A stretch of 62,919 nucleotides of DNA, filler included, from Reticulomyxa filosa (lineage: Eukaryota > Protista > Foraminifera): NCBI GenBank assembly GCA_000512085.1. It is 18 parts of 18 records of this genome, joined end to end, with 100 filler letters (N's around TTAATTAATTAA, not from the genome) between each part and the next. Parts side by side here need not be neighbours in the genome. Positions count along the whole stretch, not along the records: positions 1 to 20,958 come from ASPP01008665.1; 17 more parts are not named here. One strand, given 5' to 3'. Below are positions 2,500 to 17,959 of the stretch, piece after piece. The translations under genes were made by a program, and so were the position numbers. Position 1 is the first letter of the stretch; each line of letters opens with the position of its first letter. The notes under the pieces are model-generated. The model saw only the letters and a program-made list of their open reading frames with translations. It did no database searches and had not been told where the DNA came from.

Positions 2500-5400
2500 T
2501 CACCTCTTGTCACTTGGACACTTTCCTTCCTCAATGCACACATCCATTTGCATTGCTTACAGCTGCAAACATTTAATAACAAAGACATCCAGCTAATTAA
2601 ATTTTTTCAAATATATCTTTTACACACAATATGTATTGCTTTTTCACAATTATTTTCGTCTTTGATGTTTTTTGCTGCCATTGCCTGTCCAGTCCTCCAA
2701 TTGATTTTCATCTGTACCCATATGAACAGAATATGTATCTATCACATGAGACAGAGCACTTGCGATGGTTTGTATCTTTTCAAGGTTGTTGTTTTCCATG
2801 CTATGCCTCATTTCAGTTATAATCTTTTCGAGATTGTGTTGCGTTTTTTTTGTTTTTGTTTGTTTGAGCGCTTTTGAGCTTTATTGTCAGGTTCACCAAC
2901 TTTTAATGATATTTTGAAAATGGGTTGAGATGATTCTACTTCGCCATTTTCTACTTTCTTTGTGTTTCCATGTTGGGGCTGGGGCAGGGCATTGTTGTCA
3001 GTATTTCCACGTTTTCGTTTCGTGTTGCCTCCTCGCTGCTCCTTAAACTTTTTCAATGTTTCCTCGGTTACACCGTGCAATTTCTGAAAATTAAAAAAAA
3101 AAGAAAGTAAAAACAAAAAAACAACGAGCAACAGTTTTTTTTATTGAACTTGGAAAAACTCTTGAAATTGAATTGCAACAATCAAAATCAGCGCGTCAGA
3201 GCAACAACAGACCCAAGTCGTTGTGCTTGTATCTTGACCTTGGAGTAATGACTTCAATTCAGTACTAACGGCTGTGAAAGTGTTGTTTACAAACGCACTA
3301 ACACTCGAGCATATGGCATGCGGTTGATTTTCCAAATCGTTATCAAAGTTGAGCGAGCACAAAATGTGGCTAAGGAATGTGAGAAATTCTACGCATTGTA
3401 ATTTTATCAGACAGCGTTTTTTCAAGGCGTCATTCTCATCTCCAATCGTGGGAAGCAGCGACAAGCGTCGTTTTATATTTGGGCCAAAAGTATCGTAGAG
3501 CCTTTCGAGATCAAAATACTGCGTCAATTCACCAACAAATTCGGATACAACACCTTTGTGACGGGGCAAGACCTCAAATAATTTGAATAGTCTTCCCATC
3601 CCCTCTTGTATCACTTTTGCAATTTCCTTGGTCTCTGTTTGAATGTCTATCTCTGAGAATGGAATAAGCACAACAACAATCATTAACACAAAGTAAAAAA
3701 AAAACAAACAAAACAAAACGTAACCACTATCACAATCAGCAACTATTGTCTTTTCGACAAGCGATACATGAAAAACATTTTCATACAATAAAAATGCCTT
3801 GACAATGCCATCAAGCACACACGTTCGAAACAGGGTTGGGTGTTTGTGAACCAATTTGGTCAGAATATAACCGCATTGCTCTCTAATGTTGATGCGCTCC
3901 AAGTCAAACATAAGGGCAAATACACTGGGCACCAGATCTACTGGTGACACCAGCGATTGAACCACGAGGTCGTAAATCACCCACACGCTTTCGCTACGTA
4001 TGTTGCTGTGGACTGAAAATGTTAGATTTGTCACAAGTGGTGATAGTTGATTCATTGCTGTTATCAGCTCAGCAGAATAGGCTTCTGAAGCAAAATCAAA
4101 ATTCGATTTGAATTGGATGTCTTTGTTATCAAGGATTTTTGTTTTATTCTTATCGTCACCATCCACGTAATCATCACAGTCGATTGTTTTATTTTGCGGA
4201 CTGTCTTCGTCATTTTTTTCGTCTGTTTTTTCCTCTTCACTGTTTGATTGGTCTTCTTTGCGGTGTTTTGTTTTGCTTTTGCCAAACTGTTCATTGCTGC
4301 GGCTGGGCTGGGTCATATTATTTTGTAATGTCAATTCATTTTGATTATGTTCGACCAAAAACGTATGCAATGAATGTAATGTGAAAAATTGCAAAGTGAC
4401 ATTCTCTTGGTGCTGCAAGCAGTGACGAAAAGCTTCCAAAGAGCGAGGGTTGTTTATAAACATGGGATAATATCGTGAGTAAAAATGGCATAGCCCGATG
4501 ACGCTTGCACAAGGGATGGACGTATTTTTCCAATAGATAAATCTCAAGAGCATTTCAAACACATTGCGCAAAAACAATCTAAAAAACAACACAATTATGT
4601 TCAAAAAAATTCCTGTTACCTTGAATTTTGATTGATGAGGAAATGCAAATATTAACTTGGCATTTGGTGACAGTTGGACTAGTGCACTATTCATGCCTTT
4701 CTCTGCAATTTTTTGGATTTGGCTTTGTTTTGTTATACTTGATTTGATTGTATTGTTGTTCTCATTTACGTCGTTGTTTTCTATTTCGGTGATTAAATTT
4801 CGTTTGAATGCAAATTGTGGAATCTGTTTCATCACGTCAAAGTGCTTTGCAAATAAGCACAGTGATATCAATGATCTCAAGACCAAAGAGTCATTTGGGA
4901 TGGCTTTGCAATTCTCCCACACTTCGTTATTCAAGCGACAGTACAATACTTCGAACAAATTGCACAGATTTGTATGAAATAATCTGTGATCTTTCGACAA
5001 ATATTGAATGACATTACAAAAGCATTCAATGCAAGCCTCCAATAGTGCTGTGCCATCGCATGTGTCATTTCTCAGATTTTTCAATGGAAAGCGCCACATT
5101 ATGCTTCGTAAGCTGCTTTGCAAGTGCTGTACCAGTGTTGGGCTTGCTGGAAGTTCCACGTGGGGCAGAAGGTTGCAAATGATCTTGACAATTTCTATAG
5201 TCACATTGTTGTGAGGACCAACATTCGATTGAGCTGAGTCGAAACATGGTACTTGCAAGAACATGCAGATTTGTTCAAAATATTTTTTTAAGAGTAATGG
5301 ATGCACTCTGCTAAACAAATATAAGGTGGACACGCAAGAATGAGTGTTTGTCTCATTGCTTTGTGCATTGACAAGTTTAGAAATGACTACGTCGCACATG

Positions 5401-8400
5401 TCTTCACAGATAGCATATATGCGTTGATGTTCATTTGTTGGATTGGGTCCAGACTGGCCATTGATGAATTGGATCATAGTGGATATTACCTCAACCAAGC
5501 GACTGCGACTTTTGTCGTCAATGCCATTTACGCTGTCAATAATCCGTTGCACAAGGCCTTTAAATTCGAGAGAGTACTCTTTTATGCTGGACTCATCTAC
5601 TCGCTTCACGCGATTGGACAAAATGTGACGAATACCTAAAAACTCTCTTTCTTCGATTTTGTCATCGACATTGTTTAAGCATCCTCCGAACCACATTTTC
5701 TTAAATGTTTGTGTCACAAGCGCTACAATTCTCTCATTTGAATCTGTCATGCGTGATAATAACGTGGAGCAAATTTCATTGTATTGAGGATGGTACTTTG
5801 TGTAATAGCTGCCTTTGTCGTGACCTTGATGTTTTCATTTTTTATTTGTTGTTTTGTTTTGCAATTGCATTCGAATGTGCAAACATACCATTAGATAACA
5901 AGCAGCACAATTCTTGCAAAATTTGAATGACTCTCTTCCTTACTGACACGCCCGAGTCTTTGATTCTTTTCATCAGCATTTGCAAATACTCTGTTTCATT
6001 CGCTGCAAAGTCAGAAAAGGGCAGTGCCAACATATATTTTCCCACCAAATCTACTGCCGATTCTCTGACCGCGATTGATTTGTCAGACAGCTTTGCTTTG
6101 ATGACCTGCTTGATGGAATCGAAATGAAATATCTTTGGATCCACGTCCACAAGTGCGGACAAGAACTTCAACGCTTTTGTTCGATTTTTGGATTGCGTGT
6201 GGTGCAACTCTTGCAAAATGATTGCAACACATTCGTTGCAAGCCGCAACTAACCCACGTTTCCTTGAGAGTTGACCGTTCAACTGAATTGTTTGCTCATC
6301 CGAAAAATGAGAGACATATTTCGTCTTGCATTCGCATGGCCAAAGCTTGCAAAACAAATTCCAAATGAGTGGATGCAGCGATTTGATTGGATCAATGTTA
6401 TTATTGTCTCCATCAGACAATTTCAAATCGCCTGCACCACTCTCTTCACTCCCTTCCAATTTCTTTTTTCGATTTTTGCCATCTGTCGAGGTTGCTTGCT
6501 TTCCTAAAGACAAAAGATAGTCGAGAAAAGGAACTTGCTAATTTTGGATATGAAAGAAGAAAGAAGTACTGACCTTTTTTCACTTGTTTTCGATTACGTG
6601 CTTTTGAAGAAGTTGCTACTTCTTCCTTTTGTGGACATAAGGTCGATGCAGGCTTTGGTAGTAGGCTCTGATGCAATGAAGCCAACCAGCGCATCAAATG
6701 GTAGTATCGGGCCGATGTTATCAGTGATGATAAATCGTCTCCCGTCCTTTAGTACACAAAGCAAACTACTTATTCTTTGGTTGTTTTGATTTGTTTGATA
6801 TTTTCTTAACTGTGCGAGCAGGTAATTAAGCACCAAAATATTCTGATTACATTCGTATTCAAACTATTTAAACAAAAGTCACAGTGCTTAGCCTCTTCCT
6901 CATAATAATTAATATGTAATCTTTTGATACATTGCGCAAAAGACAATCAAAGGGAAAGTAAAAAATGGCATACTTGTCAGAATGTAAAATATCCATTTCA
7001 CAGGACAAAAGGTCCATATCTCTGAGAGCGGCACAGGGGATACAATACCAACTTTGATTACTTTCGGCCTTCCTGTCATTATATTTATCATGGGCCATTA
7101 CGCAAATTTTGTGGAAAGAAGCGCTGCAATTTTCACAGGTGATTGTTGGCTTGTCATCGCTCACGCCATTATTTTTGTCACAAGTACAACTTATTTCTTT
7201 GTTGTTCGTAACGAGACATTGCAATTTTCATCCCCTTTTGCGTGTTGTTTCTCAAATTTGTCGCAACGAGTGACGGAAGTTTCGACATCAACAACACAGA
7301 TCTTTTCACACTGGTGCAGATAGTTATCAATGCATCGATAAGATAAGGTCGCATCTTGTTTTCCAATTTGCTTTCCTTGTCTTTTTCTTTTTCTTTTTTA
7401 TTTTCTTCGGTGACAGTCTGTGAAGAAACCGAAGAATTTTTTTTTAAAATTTGCACCAAGTATTTGGTGATTATCCGTAACAGTGACTCGGCGACAGGCC
7501 ATTCTGGCAGCTGATATACTGCTAACAAGTCACTTATCAGAGCTGTCAAAATATCCGTATTCTCGTAACGATACACACATTGTCTTAACAATTGCTATTC
7601 AAGACAAAGTCTCACGAGTTCGTTTTTGCTGAACTTTTTCGAACAAACAAAAGAAGGCACTTACCCCGACAAAGTGGTTAAGCAAACTTTGGATTTCGAG
7701 CAATGGCCCAGTTATCATTTTTTTGAAAAATGAAATTTGTGCAGCAGTTGTCATTTGCTCAATCGCCATTTGGCTCTCTTGACCTGCGTTGTGCATTGCC
7801 ATCGATTGAAATAGTTGAAGTGTGACCGCACTGCATGCCAAGATTTGCTTTCCACCTTTTCGACTGCAGAAAATGGATTTGCTCTTAGGATTATCGAAAG
7901 TATCGACAATGCGTCCAATTACTTCGTGTTTCATGTCGGACGAGTGCCGATATTTGGAATGATTCAAAATGTTTTCAATCAACAGCTGACACTTTTCTTG
8001 AATCAGTTGAAAATTGCCAACACCGAATGAATAAAAGCAGATATCCAACAATTGTTGAACATGTTTATCATCTAAATTTGATTCCCTTTGCAACAGTTGT
8101 GACAACAAGGAAAAGAGATGAGTGACCATGGAAGAATACAGTGCTACTAAATCTCCACTCAGTTCTTTCCAACAGTCATCGCGATTGATTGTCTGAGTTG
8201 TTTTTTTTGCTTTCGTTTTTCTGAGACTCTTTTTCGTATCGACACCTTTTTCATTTACGCAATTTTTTTTTTTTTTTAAAAAAAAAGACGATCTTGTTTA
8301 ATCTTTTTCGAATGTGAAAAAACAGAACAACTTGAAAGGACAAAATCAACAAAATGTACTCTCTTCCCTTTTTATCCATAATTAGTTTGACTTGTTTTAA

Positions 8401-9806
8401 CCTGAAGCGGCGCTGCACTTATTTCTGCACTTGGCGTCTTTCCACGGCGCAAGCAATTCCATCAGAACGAACTGGCTAAGACGAATGCTGTTGTAGATGA
8501 TCCCTCCTTGAATGAATTTCCTCGGCGTATCTTCGCAGCGCATTACCAGCAAAGCAGCCAACGATGCATAGACAACATTTGACAATTGTTCAATGGTTCG
8601 CACTTCGATTGCTTCCTTGGAGTCGTCAAGTTTGAAAATGAATTCGTTGAGCAGACCATCAATCATTGCAAAGAATCGTTCCAACTCGCGCTCATCCAAG
8701 TCTTTTCGCCAGTAATTACTATTCGTATTTGCATTAATAGCGATCCAAATAGAGAATACATTGCGCTCCAATGTAAATGCTTATCTTCGTCATTCGTTTG
8801 CATATCAAAGCGAGCTTGTCTTTCTGTTTCCAATGGGGCATCTCTTTCATCAATGCACCACTTTTCGTTAAAGGCATGAAGCAAATAATTGGCATTTGTC
8901 AACAGTCCTTTTTTGTCAGGTGAATCATCCATCAGTTTTGATGATGTGGGATTTTGCAATGCTTCCATGCGATTTTCTTGGGTCCGTTTTTGTGTCGTTT
9001 GAATTGAATTTGAATGTGTCGTTTCTTTTTCTTTATTATTGTCAGAATGTACATCTTTCAAGGCGTCTTGTTTCAAAGCCATCCTCACTCTTCTTTGTCT
9101 TTTTCTTGGAGGTTCCACTGGATCTCGAATAGGACTGGATGACAATTCTAGACATTACACAAAAAGTTACTTTTCGTGCCAAACAATATTTTCATAAACA
9201 GCTGCCATTTGAGCAAAAAGAGACCAAGATAGATACCAAAGCTTCTTTTTTTAATTGGTTGCTCGAGACTGGAATGTCTATCACTTTTTTCGTCGTCAGC
9301 TGGACTGTTTTTATCTTTGTCTTGTTGTGATATAGTCTTGTCATTCTTTATTTTTTCCTCCTCTTCATTCAAGTTATACGTTTCTGGTAGCTTTTTCGAA
9401 GAAACATTTTGATTGGTTGCGCCCTCATTTGTCTGAACGGATTCACTTTGGCATTGACCATTTAAATTCTGTTCACATCAATCAACAGGGTATGTTGGCA
9501 AGGTTGTCACAATTTTTATGATTGGCTGAGTTAATGCGACGTAATTCTCGCAAGTATTATTGTAAGTGTAATACGAAAAAAAAAAGCAAGAAGGGGAAGA
9601 AATAAAAATTTGCTGACGGAAAGGTGTTCCAACGATTCTTTAATATTTGACTTCTTGACTTCTTCTAGCAGTGCCTTCATTATCGTATTGTCACAAACTG
9701 TTGTCAAAAATGCACGTTGTTAAATAAGATTTTTCATAACTTTAACTAAAGGCGTATTTGCTGGACGCTTGCGTGCACGACGCACTCTTGGATTTGCTTT
9801 GTCCAT
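2500..9806 (-). CDS. NIPBL: Cohesin loader Scc2/Nipped-B-like protein, multi-exon, with an internal PHD finger
   Basis: LISDLLAVYQLPEWPVAESLL (conserved PEWP motif); cohesin HEAT block RTKALKFLSALVDVDP...LSDKSIAVRESAVDLVGKY...RIKDSGVSVRKRVIQIL; Nipped-B C-terminal LVSPVDLVPSVFALMFD. Both ends approximate. Confidence 0.92.
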
Positions 9807-10526: not shown

Positions 10527-12058
10527 TCATGCCCATATACGTCCAGTCATGTCCCAGCCAGCAGTGACCAGAGCGAAGCCGTCTTTTGTCATGGCAAGAG
10601 AAGAGATAGCATCGTTATGTTCCAAAATTGAATGCGGAAGAGCCGACATAGTGTTCCAAGCAACACAGTGAGGATAGTCATCATAAGCAGCAAATAGGAA
10701 ATAGCCACTTTTGGAAAAGGTGATGCTAGTAACAGCGGGAGGCGTGGGTAGAGCATTGCTTTTTTCGACATGATTGCCATAGTCGTACAAGTTTAGTTGT
10801 CCCATGGACCGAAGGTCCCACAGCCGAACAGTTCCATCTACACTGGCAGAAGCAAATGTAAAGTTGTAAGAAGGGAACCATTTGACTGCATTGACATCAT
10901 TTTCGTGTCCATAGAAAGTCATGACACAATGATCTGTCCCACATCCGAAGGGGGTACTTCCTTTTTTTTTTTGAAAAAAAAAAAGCACACAGATTATATA
11001 ATATACATACATAAATACGTATACATATATGTATATGTACATATATAATGTGTACATATTTATGTATGTATGTATGTATATATACGTATATAGTAAAAAT
11101 ATGAATAGTATATGCAAATTGTATAAGCGACAAAAACAACGTATACAACAACGTACCAGTGTGATCAGTTTCACTAGAAATTTTTTTGGAGACCCGAATA
11201 TCCCATAGTTTAACGGTTTTGTCGATGGACCCAGTTAAGACCAGCGAGTGATGTTTGGTGTTGATAGTTTCGTTCATGTTGTCTATTCCAATGACGTCAG
11301 CTTTGTGAGCGCGAAAGCGGGACTTGACGCTTCTGGTCTCAATGTCCCACAGCAGACACGAGCTGTCACCGCTGGACGTGATGATTTCGTAGTTGCTCAT
11401 GAAGCGACATTGGCTGACGTAGCCTTGGTGCTCCAACAGTTCGCACTTGGCACTGCTGTAGTCGTCCTTGTGAAAGATCGAACACACGTTGTCTAACCCT
11501 CCTCCCGCCAATAATGACCCGTCTGGTGAAAAGTCTACTGCCATCACCGAATTGTGTTCCACTGATATCACTTGTCGTTTCAGTCCTGTTTTTGAATTCC
11601 ATATCTTTTTTTTTTTTTTTAAATTATGTATTTTATTTGTGTTTGTGTTTGTGTTTGTATATGCGCATGTTCGTTTTTTTTTTTTTTTTTTTTTGTTCCG
11701 CTCTTTCGCAGAATAGACTTGGCTAAACTATTATCTTTTCGTCCTGTGCGCCGCTTGCAATCTCTCCCGAATCGTTCGTGGCCAGACAATAAATCTTCCC
11801 GAAATGTCCTCGCAATTCTCGTCCACATCTCAAGGGGCTGTTGTATGCTATTTCCTTTTTTGACATCGAACTTTGACTTTGCTCTTTCAGTGTGTTGGGG
11901 TAGTCCTTCGTGTAACGCGTTTGTAGAGACTTTATCTTCGACTGAATCTCTTCACACATATTTTTGCATTTTTCCAATAGCCCCGAAATTGATTCTGTAG
12001 TTGTCGAGGTGGAACTCTTGTCGTTGCCCACACTCTTTTTATCCGAAGCTGAGCTCAT
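10527..12058 (-). CDS. Heterotrimeric G-protein beta subunit (WD40), 3 exons
   Basis: RELRGHFGKIYC, GGGLDNVCSIF, HQGYVSQCRF, TSSGDSSCLLWDIET, TFYGHENDVNAVKWFP and ALVTAGWDMTGRIWA. Introns at 11605-11728 and about 10961-11156. Confidence 0.9.
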
Positions 12059-15643: not shown

Positions 15644-17959
15644 ATGTCGTCATATTTGCGCAAGGTTTTGCTAAATGCAGACGGTGATGACGAGGTGGAA
15701 CAACAGAAACCAAAGGCAAGGTGAATTTTCTTATGCTTTCGTTGACTAAGCTTAAGACTTGTTTGCACGTCTTTTATCCTCTCGTTTTAAAAAAATGGGT
15801 TGTATTTTTCCCTACCATGTCGGATGACAGAAAGCAGTACCACATTGGCTGCAGGGGATTCAAACGAGCCAACGTGTGACTGATGACACCTCAGAGGTTA
15901 GAGCGTGTTTGTGTTTGTATCATTTCAATGACCACAACAAGCGGAAGCAGCAGTAAAGGGACTCTTCGGGCCCGCATGCACACAAGCGATAATAACTTTG
16001 GAATACACATACATACACACATACGTGCGACACAATAGCTGTACGAAGAAAAGGCCGACGAATTGGAAAAAAAGAAGCAAAGTAAGGACTAAAAGAACAG
16101 TCCTTTGGAGGAGGGGGTTTCAAAGGGGGGGGAAAGTTGTTTTTTAATTCAGATATATTCACATATCAATCGTATAAGGCATATCCCCCCCCCTCCTCTC
16201 CTCTTCTTTTTTTTTTTTTAAAAAAAAATGTTGTTTCAATAGTTTGTGTGTACTTTGCTATTTATTGTATGATGAAACATGCCGAAATGCAAATAAGTGG
16301 AGCAACTGCAAAGCAAAAAGTGTTATGAATGTGGCGAGTTTGGCCACGTGGTGAAGGAATGCCCGAACAAATTGAAAAAGCGAATGAATGGACGTTTTAA
16401 AGAAAGCGATTGGTGTTGTCCGATGTGTGCAAACATCAATTGGGATTGGCGACAGCACTGTAACAAATGTTCCACTCCAAAGCCCAGCGGCGCAACAGAA
16501 AAGAGGACTGGGCGTGGCGGTGGATACAACGAAATTGATGTTTTGTATTTTATTTTATTTTATTTTTTTATTAAAAAAAAAAAAAAGAAATTATTTTTCA
16601 AATTCTCTCGAAAATTCGCACATACAAAAAAAAAAAAAAAAAAACGGAAAAAAAGGAGGAAACACGAGCTCGTATCGCAGCATTGCGAGCAGCCAAGTCA
16701 GAAAAAGAAAAAGATAGCGAAGGAGGAAAGAGAGAAGACTCAGGAATGGATGAAGGATCAACCCCGATTTATGTTGGCGAGTCGGATGGCAACCCGACAA
16801 TCCTCGTACGCAATTTGAACAAAGATAGAATAAGCGTGTCGGAATTGGTGGCGTTCTTTGGACAAATTGGCAAAGTCGCACAAAACAAAAAGACCAAAGA
16901 CCACGAAGTGCAGATCCTAACCGACGCAGAGACACAAAGACCGACAGGGGAGGCTTTGGTCACGTATGATGACGCACACGCCGCTGCCTCGGCCATTCGT
17001 TGGTTTGACCAGGCCGAGTTTTTGGGACAAATGATTCGAGTTAATCAAACCACAAATACAAAATATACAAATGCAAATTTGTTGCATGTCAAACCAAAGT
17101 AAATTTAATTTGGTTGAGTGATCCATTCATTTGATTGATTGATTGATTGTTTATACAAATGGAAATGTGCAAAGGTGGAAATGGCAGTGCAAAATACTCA
17201 GCCCAGCGACGAAGGCGGGGACGAAGACGACGATGCCAACATCGAAGCTGAACTGTTCGGATATGCCACTCGTGGAAGAGGACGTGGTCGTGGAAGCAGA
17301 GGCGCCAGAGGGGGTCGTGGTGGTGGTGCTGCTGCTCCGGGGGGCTTGCCTTTGTTTGCACCCGACGATTGGAAATGCGACATGTTTTGATACCTCTCTT
17401 TTTTCCCCCTTTCTTGCTTCATTCGCTTTGACAAAGAGGGGAAACTAAACAAGGACATACCAAACATTAACTCACGCTCAACAGATGCAACAATGTCAAT
17501 TGGGCGCGTCGTGAAATGTGCAATCGCTGTGGCGAACCCAAACCCGAGTACGTAAAGAAATTGCAAGAGGAGGCTCGCAAGGAAATGGAAACGCATCAAA
17601 GTCATGCTGGCAATACTTCTCATGTGAGCGCAAACAACAAAGCAAATGACTTAAATGAACAATCTATCATTTTCAATGAGGAGATCCCACAAGATCAGGA
17701 GGATGATATAGGACAGGAAGAGATACACGACCACAAACGAGACAAACAAAAAGAACGAGATAGAAGTAACAAGAATAAACACAGTCGGAGCGGAGATAGA
17801 GATAGAGACAGAGACAAAAACAGAGATCGAGATAAAAACAGAGATAGAGACAGAGATAGAGATAGAGACAGAGACAGAGAAAAACGATCTCGTCGTAGTC
17901 GCAGCAGAGGGTCTCATCGCAATGGAGATAAAGACAGTAATCGAAGTCGAAGAAGGTGA
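15644..17959 (+). CDS. RNA-binding protein: CCHC knuckle, RanBP2 zinc finger, TET-family RRM, RGG, second RanBP2 finger, RD/RS tail (TAF15/ZRANB2-like)
   Basis: CYECGEFGHVVKEC; DWCCPMCANINWDWRQHCNKC; FFGQIG...PTGEALVTYDDAHAAASAIRWFD; RGRGRGRGSRGARGGRGG; DDWKC..CNNVNWARREMCNRCGEPKP. 5' exons uncertain. Confidence 0.85.
17790..17882 (+). repeat. Coding GAYAGA hexamer repeat (Asp-Arg dipeptides)
   Basis: gatagagatagagacagagac... encodes RDRDRD in the low-complexity tail. Confidence 0.85.

Follow-up and report, generated by a model that had tools for sequence, protein, structure and literature searches.

A PHD finger in the Scc2/NIPBL cohesin-loader locus of the foraminiferan Reticulomyxa filosa, with counterparts in other protists

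The PHD finger of Arabidopsis SCC2 binds the tails of histones H3, H2A, and H4 and is required for meiotic cohesin loading (PMC7304647). The same work reports that this finger lacks the aromatic cage for histone H3 trimethylated at lysine 4 (H3K4me3) and that the H3, H2A, and H4 tails are bound unmodified (PMC7304647). Wang et al. (2020), the only experimental study of this domain, described the SCC2 PHD as restricted to land plants, being absent in Chlamydomonas, Volvox, Micromonas, animals, and fungi, and suggested that it originated with terrestrialisation (PMC7304647). Here we describe a PHD finger at positions 7033–7188 (minus strand) of a 62,919-nt stretch of Reticulomyxa filosa DNA (fillers included; hereafter, the window), within an Scc2/NIPBL locus carried by ASPP01008665.1 (assembly GCA_000512085.1), a contig of 20,958 bp that is present whole. 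The finger had been picked out in a sequence-only reading of the window, whose background statement (a PHD in plant SCC2, none in animals or fungi) agrees with Wang et al. (2020) (PMC7304647).

The finger lies in a 118-codon open reading frame (ORF) on the minus strand (6868–7224), reading ...ISCTCDKNNGVSDDKPTITCENCSASFHKICVMAHDKYNDRKAESNQSWYCIPCAALR..., and extends from Cys13, whose codon begins at 7188, to Cys64, whose codon finishes at 7033. Its ligands follow the pattern C-x-C-x14-C-x2-C-x4-H-x2-C-x17-W-x-C-x2-C (here CTC-x14-CENC-x4-H-x2-C-x17-WYCIPC), which is the canonical C4HC3 spacing. The complete C4HC3 PHD with its diagnostic Trp that had been read from the sequence was recovered with exact spacing, and the Pfam PHD hidden Markov model (PF00628) aligned over its full length (1–47 of 47) to residues 13–64 (E 3.3e-5, 24.3 bits against a gathering cut-off of 24). 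The best match among Protein Data Bank (PDB) sequences (phmmer) was the Pygopus PHD (E 2.6e-5, 27.8 bits). A regular expression for the PHD pattern matched once in the six-frame translation of the window, compared with no match in 500 first-order Markov randomisations. Across a 13-sequence alignment (A1), none of the eight zinc ligands varies, and neither does the Trp. An AlphaFold2 (AF2) model built with a 13-sequence alignment reached a predicted local confidence (pLDDT) of 72.5; the single-sequence model reached 43. When the AF2 model was compared with the PDB by Foldseek, the top 50 hits were all PHD fingers (template-modelling score, TM, 0.43–0.63), yet with E-values of at least 0.096. 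We regard 7033–7188 as confirmed to be an intact predicted PHD finger of R. filosa.

GenBank represents this locus by three models (7178–9680, 5842–6694, and 2817–5750, all minus strand), each named "hypothetical protein". The finger falls in the gap without annotation between the first two, and the model at 7178–9680 terminates at a stop (7178–7180) produced by a break in the frame. We searched a profile of 11 PHD-bearing Scc2 proteins against all stop-to-stop pieces of the minus strand. Searches and folding used single exons or ORFs, and joins were enumerated locally, for frame compatibility only. The matching pieces were as follows.

8418–8699, minus strand: N-terminal coding piece of Scc2 (11-protein profile, positions 95–189, E 2.6e-8)
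7665–8249, minus strand: coding piece upstream of the PEWP motif (profile 191–382, E 1.5e-14)
7268–7591, minus strand: PEWP motif helix and the next helix (LPEWPVAESLL ... LIDALITICTSVKRSVLLMSKLPSL; profile 384–477, E 8.4e-16, 49.8 bits)
7033–7188, minus strand: PHD finger, C4HC3, with Trp two residues before the seventh ligand (Pfam PF00628; profile 494–546 matching 7206–7021)
6789–6836, minus strand: LNYL motif (LVLNYLLAQLRKYQTN; profile 578–593, in the expected order; weak when taken alone, E 5.7, and seen in the homologue alignment)
6626–6721, minus strand: exon with the AR..W motif (ITSARYYHLMRWLASL...; profile 593–618, E 0.13, in the expected order)
5899–6363, minus strand: first cohesin HEAT block (Cohesin_HEAT, 40.7 bits; profile 619–772, E 2.1e-41)
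3141–5750, minus strand: hook HEAT repeats and Nipped-B_C (869-codon ORF; profile 775–1293 matching 5795–3768, E 2.1e-64)

The matches are strictly collinear on the minus strand (95–189, 191–382, 384–477, 494–546, 578–593, 593–618, 619–772, and 775–1293). The finger is located between the PEWP helix pair (384–477), carried by the upstream ORF 7178–7591 (minus strand), and the LNYL, AR..W, and HEAT elements (578–772), a position that was compared with protist members only. The collinear order therefore places the finger where a PHD-bearing Scc2 should carry one. Among Pfam models, Cohesin_HEAT (PF12765) scored 40.7 bits on ORF 5842–6513 (cut-off 21), and Nipped-B_C (PF12830) scored 35.4 bits on ORF 3141–5750 (cut-off 26.4). 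The latter ORF is covered over 100% of its length, at 97% identity, by the R. filosa database protein RFI_11876 (ETO25258.1; P0001 in our set), the difference being a 57-nt intron that is spliced out of the database model. On these matches, the three GenBank models and the gap without annotation are a single predicted Scc2/NIPBL cohesin-loader gene. On the minus strand, this gene is predicted to start no further downstream than 8699, where the first codon aligned to the profile lies (the GenBank N-terminal start is at 9680), and to extend to about 2820. For Reticulomyxa, the practical value is a corrected annotation, in which three GenBank models and a gap become one Scc2 gene.

The Reticulomyxa Scc2 is very divergent, and for this reason the 869-residue ORF found only 14 relatives when 1.84 billion representatives were searched exhaustively with HMMER. 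The relatives include a transcript-derived Scc2 of another foraminiferan, Nonionella stella, to which the ORF is 25% identical. In the Nonionella protein (1812 residues), hmmscan places a PHD at 635–678, Cohesin_HEAT at 867–908, and Nipped-B_C at 1398–1583, and a PEWP motif occurs at 553. The Reticulomyxa PEWP piece aligns with residues 537–584 of this protein (BLASTP, E 1e-5), the finger with residues 635–678 (27% identity, E 0.005), and the HEAT piece with residues 801–949 (BLASTP, 36% identity, E 9e-26). The placement proposed in the sequence-only reading, a PHD between the PEWP motif and the first cohesin HEAT block of a non-plant Scc2/NIPBL, is upheld, being collinear with full-length orthologues. 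We consider it probable that 7033–7188 encodes a PHD finger of a single Scc2/NIPBL gene, at the position used by other rhizarian and amoebozoan Scc2 proteins.

A problem with the frame upstream of the finger had also been noticed, and it is real. The frame has to change within a short interval (junction A).

7181–7227 (47 nt), minus strand: zone of change from the PEWP exon frame to the PHD frame, bounded by stops at 7178–7180 and 7228–7230

The PEWP exon frame stops at 7178–7180, and the PHD frame opens only after the stop at 7228–7230. Only 61 nt lie between the last aligned codon of the PEWP exon (7268) and the first aligned codon of the finger (7206), compared with 17 profile positions. 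The annotated and clear introns of this contig have a thymine (T) fraction of 0.44–0.60; the candidate introns at junction A have a T fraction of 0.19–0.24 and a G+C fraction (GC) of about 0.40, an exon-like composition. The sequence-only reading had offered either an intron at about 7198–7311 or a 1-nt indel, and it is the indel that fits better. A 115-nt phase-compatible intron at about 7197–7311, joining the PEWP exon to the finger, does give a stop-free join through the GT-AG pair 7311/7197. However, SVKRSVLLMSKLPSL would be lost with it, and this segment corresponds in homologues to the second helix, which is conserved: truncating the profile match at 7312 loses 7.3 bits, and at 7276 only 0.5 bits. 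Its composition (T 0.24, GC 0.40) is also unlike that of true introns here, and we judge it quite improbable. An 85-nt intron at 7190–7274 is a less remote explanation, though still an unlikely one. The most likely cause of the break is a one-base length error in the draft assembly (N50 3.6 kb); the other candidate is an intron that is short and atypical. We favour, with reasonable but not strong confidence, a one-base length error or polymorphism within 7181–7227, for example in the A4 run at 7225–7228. GT-AG "introns" of 16–28 nt at junction A were rejected as implausibly short compared with the 57- to 196-nt introns of the contig.

The R. filosa assembly is a fragmented draft of 50,809 scaffolds (N50 3.6 kb) in which annotated introns average 87 bp (PMC13746701 Table 1). 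We noted two frame changes within 500 bp of the Scc2 gene, one at 6747–6810, where an A-rich 64-nt intron is plausible, and one at 7181–7227, where none is. Their proximity, together with the N50, suggests possible base-level indel errors in the draft. Such errors may be common in the assembly and may fragment many gene models.

Downstream from the finger, every frame change appears solvable by candidate canonical GT-AG introns of ordinary size.

6864–6930 (67 nt), or with another acceptor 6843–6930 (88 nt), minus strand: candidate GT-AG intron from the PHD exon to the LNYL exon (in frame; GC 0.28, intron-like)
6747–6810 (64 nt), minus strand: candidate GT-AG intron from the LNYL exon to the AR..W exon (in frame; donor GTTAAG, acceptor CTAAAG; GC 0.26)
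6504–6573 (70 nt), minus strand: T-rich intron (GTCAGT ... TGTCTTTAG; T 0.47, like the annotated introns of the contig)

Five stop-free GT-AG joins keep both WYCIPC and LVLNYLL; those of 67 and 88 nt are near the typical intron length, and the remainder are 19–40 nt long. The 70-nt intron changes the frame as needed to enter the HEAT exon.

Several observations weigh against the assignment of the finger to this gene and to the family of Scc2 fingers. The reading frame is interrupted just upstream, with no convincing intron to explain junction A, and inclusion of the PHD exon in the mRNA is a prediction from the genomic sequence. The Pfam score is marginal, 0.3 bits over the cut-off, and the Foldseek E-values are weak (0.096 or worse), which we attribute to the modelling of a 62-residue zinc domain without its metal. 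Compared with other Scc2 fingers, the Reticulomyxa finger scores 10–18 bits, less than the 27.8 bits it obtains with Pygopus, and its orthology is therefore argued from position and not from sequence. Six stop-free in-frame GT-AG joins bypass the finger altogether (e.g., 7267 to 6864, 404 nt), and any binding of histones by it is purely inferred.

The bypassing joins raise the alternative that the PHD ORF is a relic or skipped exon, the mRNA joining the PEWP-helix exon to the LNYL exon with the finger inside an intron of ∼400–470 nt, which would give the layout seen in animals, fungi, and Mastigamoeba, or that this gene copy is broken at the frame shift. Such a reading would fit the frame interrupted just before the finger, the unusual divergence of the finger, its omission by the GenBank annotators, and the PHD-less Scc2 proteins known in Mastigamoeba and animals. 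However, introns of this species average 87 nt, about one-fifth of the 400–470 nt required here, and the stretch is exon-like in composition. Moreover, the eight ligands and the Trp are intact in a 118-codon open frame, the pattern arose in none of the 500 randomisations, and the nearest full-length relatives keep the finger at the same position; we hold a skipped or broken finger to be improbable. The same grade applies to a finger that is coding but was gained or replaced in the Reticulomyxa lineage independently of other Scc2 PHDs, by convergence or domain replacement. Scores of 10–18 bits to the other Scc2 PHDs, compared with 30–90 among those (weak pairs at 19–20 and 27–29), speak for this, together with a best solved relative that is Pygopus and not PHF2 or CFP1, and the loss of the near-invariant Trp of the CHRWFH motif. 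Set against it are the same position and the same flanking motifs in another foraminiferan, and the fast evolution of the whole Reticulomyxa Scc2 (14 relatives, 25% identity to Nonionella), so that divergence alone suffices to account for the low finger scores. A chance cysteine-rich ORF in non-coding DNA could be suspected from the 0.3-bit Pfam margin, but with no match in 500 randomised windows, an independent PDB sequence match, and the expected place in a collinear gene, we regard it as practically negligible. A coding finger of a single Scc2 gene is the reading that we carry forward.

We proceeded to survey other eukaryotes. We recovered 1044 Scc2/NIPBL proteins in a word-based search whose query was the PEWP-to-HEAT part of the Nonionella protein, and the domain survey covered the best 120 of them. 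Among these 120, precomputed annotation placed both PHD and Cohesin_HEAT in Nonionella stella, Plasmodiophora brassicae, Planoprotostelium fungivorum, the database protein P0019, and the environmental proteins P0020–P0023, P0026, and P0070 (some from Tara Oceans pico-size fractions); Nipped-B_C was also precomputed in all except P0023. P0019 is a TransDecoder ORF from a transcriptome assembly, in which PEWP, PHD, and HEAT are contiguous in the mRNA of a relative. Our own hmmscan found PHD, Cohesin_HEAT, and Nipped-B_C together in Nonionella (P0005), P0009, P0010, P0011, Plasmodiophora (P0024), Planoprotostelium (P0029), and P0019–P0021. PHD scores in these nine relatives were 22.8–40.6 bits, and eight reached the 24-bit cut-off, P0009 falling below it. 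The ESM-Atlas holds Scc2 clusters with a PHD in 65%–78% of members, one of them mostly streptophyte. From these predicted proteins, the SCC2 PHD is not plant-specific: the same predicted layout occurs in Foraminifera, Phytomyxea, and Amoebozoa, which contradicts the published land-plant-only claim.

A full-text literature search found no paper reporting a PHD in a non-plant Scc2. PHD-bearing Scc2 outside plants is thus visible in automatic database annotation and was not found in print. The novelty attached to the Reticulomyxa finger in the sequence-only reading needs to be trimmed to match: the architecture is not unique, since CEP02294.1 and PRP84253.1 were already annotated with PHD, Cohesin_HEAT, and Nipped-B_C, and it is unpublished as far as we found.

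The protist fingers form a coherent group. They are located 70–105 residues after PEWP and share the signature C-x-C-G...FMLDCD-x-CHRWFHG-x-CVG...W-x-C-x2-C. Pairwise scores among the Scc2 fingers other than that of Reticulomyxa are 30–90 bits, except for P0009–P0026 (19–20) and P0024–P0026 (27–29), and the rhizarian-type finger of P0019 scores 60 bits with that of Planoprotostelium. Against solved PHDs, the P0019 finger scores best with PHF2 (41.9 bits) and CFP1 (40.7 bits), followed by DIDO1, PHF13, PHF8, MLL5, and BPTF. As a group, the protist fingers are closer to one another than to any solved PHD. That fingers from two supergroups agree in this way at one position argues more for a single old origin than for repeated gain. 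The sequence-only reading had left the choice between a finger much older than plants and one that arose twice; similar, positionally equivalent PHDs in Foraminifera, Phytomyxea, and Amoebozoa fit the former better than the latter.

Other loaders lack the finger. No PHD was found by Pfam scan in NIPBL of Glandiceps, nor by precomputed Pfam domains and a regular-expression check in Scc2 of Mastigamoeba and in other animal NIPBLs. Two environmental relatives of the Reticulomyxa Scc2 (P0013 and P0017; European Nucleotide Archive, 1767–1830 residues) had neither PEWP nor PHD by regular expression and Pfam, which suggests that the finger was also lost among protists. We offer as a tentative proposal, to which we give slightly less than an even chance, that a finger of PHF2/CFP1 type, possibly reading H3K4me3, was present in the loader of the ancestor of Amoebozoa, Rhizaria, and plants, near the last eukaryotic common ancestor, and was later lost multiple times. 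The same tentative proposal places losses at least in opisthokonts, Archamoebae, and chlorophyte algae.

We also noted that the P0021 and P0022 clusters (Tara Oceans 0.22–3 μm; whole-genome shotgun prefix MDSY01) point to an abundant marine pico-eukaryote with an apparently intron-free Scc2 of 1452–1479 residues. This Scc2 carries the strongest PHD of the set (40.6 bits). Should the source prove to be a prasinophyte green alga, it would directly contradict the report that green algae have no such finger.

What the fingers read may differ between Reticulomyxa and its relatives. In PHF2, BPTF, and similar readers, the Trp of CHRWFH is one of the residues that cage trimethyl-lysine, and the PHD fingers of PHF2, CFP1, DIDO1, PHF8, and BPTF are H3K4me3 readers. 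Most protist Scc2 fingers are of the PHF2/CFP1/DIDO/BPTF type and are therefore plausible H3K4me3 readers; the consensus protist Scc2 finger may read this mark. The Reticulomyxa finger does not match the signature FMLDCDxCHRWFHGxCVG, reading PTITCENCSASFHKICV instead. Its ligands and the Trp before the seventh ligand are kept, FMLDC is replaced by PTITC, and the near-invariant Trp of CHRWFH is replaced by Ser (CSASFH). Because this Trp is lost, we infer that the Reticulomyxa finger does not read H3K4me3. More probably, it would bind an unmodified or differently marked tail, or serve only as a structural or interaction module.

In the mechanism we propose, the finger would give the loader direct contact with histone tails, and this contact would deliver the Scc2 hook, which activates the cohesin ATPase, to particular chromatin. 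Such targeting would parallel Arabidopsis SCC2. The loader is located at active promoters, an old observation for which a PHD-bearing Scc2 offers a simple ancestral mechanism. If the finger is ancestral, cohesin loading would originally have been targeted by Scc2 reading chromatin directly, the use of adaptors for this purpose in animals and yeast would be derived, and the "terrestrialisation" account of the plant finger would be wrong. The protist fingers shift the question from why plants added a reader to their loader to why animals, fungi, and some algae lost one.

The rest of the contig carries other recognizable genes. A G-protein beta-like WD40 gene (10527–11571, minus strand) has a 196-nt intron (11156–10961) full of TA/CA-rich microsatellite (TATACATACATACATA...), with donor GTACGT and, as acceptor, a T11-C-A11-G tract. 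Overlapping ORFs at 16297–17102 (plus strand) encode a CCHC zinc knuckle (25.7 bits) and an RRM (30.6 bits), and are probably one gene for an RNA-binding protein with a frame change or intron in between. An ORF at the contig end (20081–20527, plus strand) has a strong Ulp1/SENP peptidase C48 domain (88.5 bits); this gene is probably cut by the contig edge.

Among known systems, the loaders without a finger share the remaining architecture with Reticulomyxa. Animal NIPBL, fungal Scc2/Mis4, and Mastigamoeba Scc2 all have the PEWP helices, Cohesin_HEAT, and Nipped-B_C. They differ in the finger: no PHD was found in animal NIPBL and Mastigamoeba Scc2, and its absence in fungi is taken from Wang et al. 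(2020) alone (PMC7304647). Pygopus supplies the best PDB sequence match to the Reticulomyxa finger (27.8 bits) and the second-best structural match (2vp7 and 2dx8; Foldseek rank 2–3). Pygopus is a Wnt co-activator with no link to cohesin, and the likeness is at the level of the general PHD fold. PHF2, CFP1, DIDO1, PHF8, and BPTF are the nearest solved relatives of the consensus protist Scc2 finger; the Reticulomyxa finger differs from them in its best match and in having no Trp in the xWFH motif.

Closer in architecture are the protist loaders. Plasmodiophora brassicae CEP02294.1 and Planoprotostelium fungivorum PRP84253.1 ("Sister chromatid cohesion protein") combine PHD, Cohesin_HEAT, and Nipped-B_C as Reticulomyxa does, with the finger 80–105 residues after PEWP. 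These proteins, from a phytomyxean parasite and an amoebozoan, respectively, have consensus-type fingers, unlike Reticulomyxa, and are known from automatic annotation only, no publication having been found. The foraminiferan orthologue of Nonionella stella (EukProt EP01083_P127189, P0005) has the same order of PEWP, PHD, Cohesin_HEAT, and Nipped-B_C. Its finger is of the consensus type (FMLDCDECHRWFHGSCVGV; 31.8 bits to Pfam), and that of Reticulomyxa (PTITCENCSASFHKICV) is 27% identical to it.

Arabidopsis thaliana SCC2 belongs to a different supergroup and was compared by its published description and the coordinates of its PHD (702–745) only (PMC7304647). In this cohesin loader, as in the Reticulomyxa protein, a C4HC3 PHD precedes the HEAT hook on the N-terminal side, and the Arabidopsis finger, reported without the H3K4me3 aromatic cage, resembles that of Reticulomyxa in this respect (PMC7304647). 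For the Arabidopsis finger, histone binding and a meiotic role have been demonstrated, whereas the Reticulomyxa finger is known from genomic sequence.

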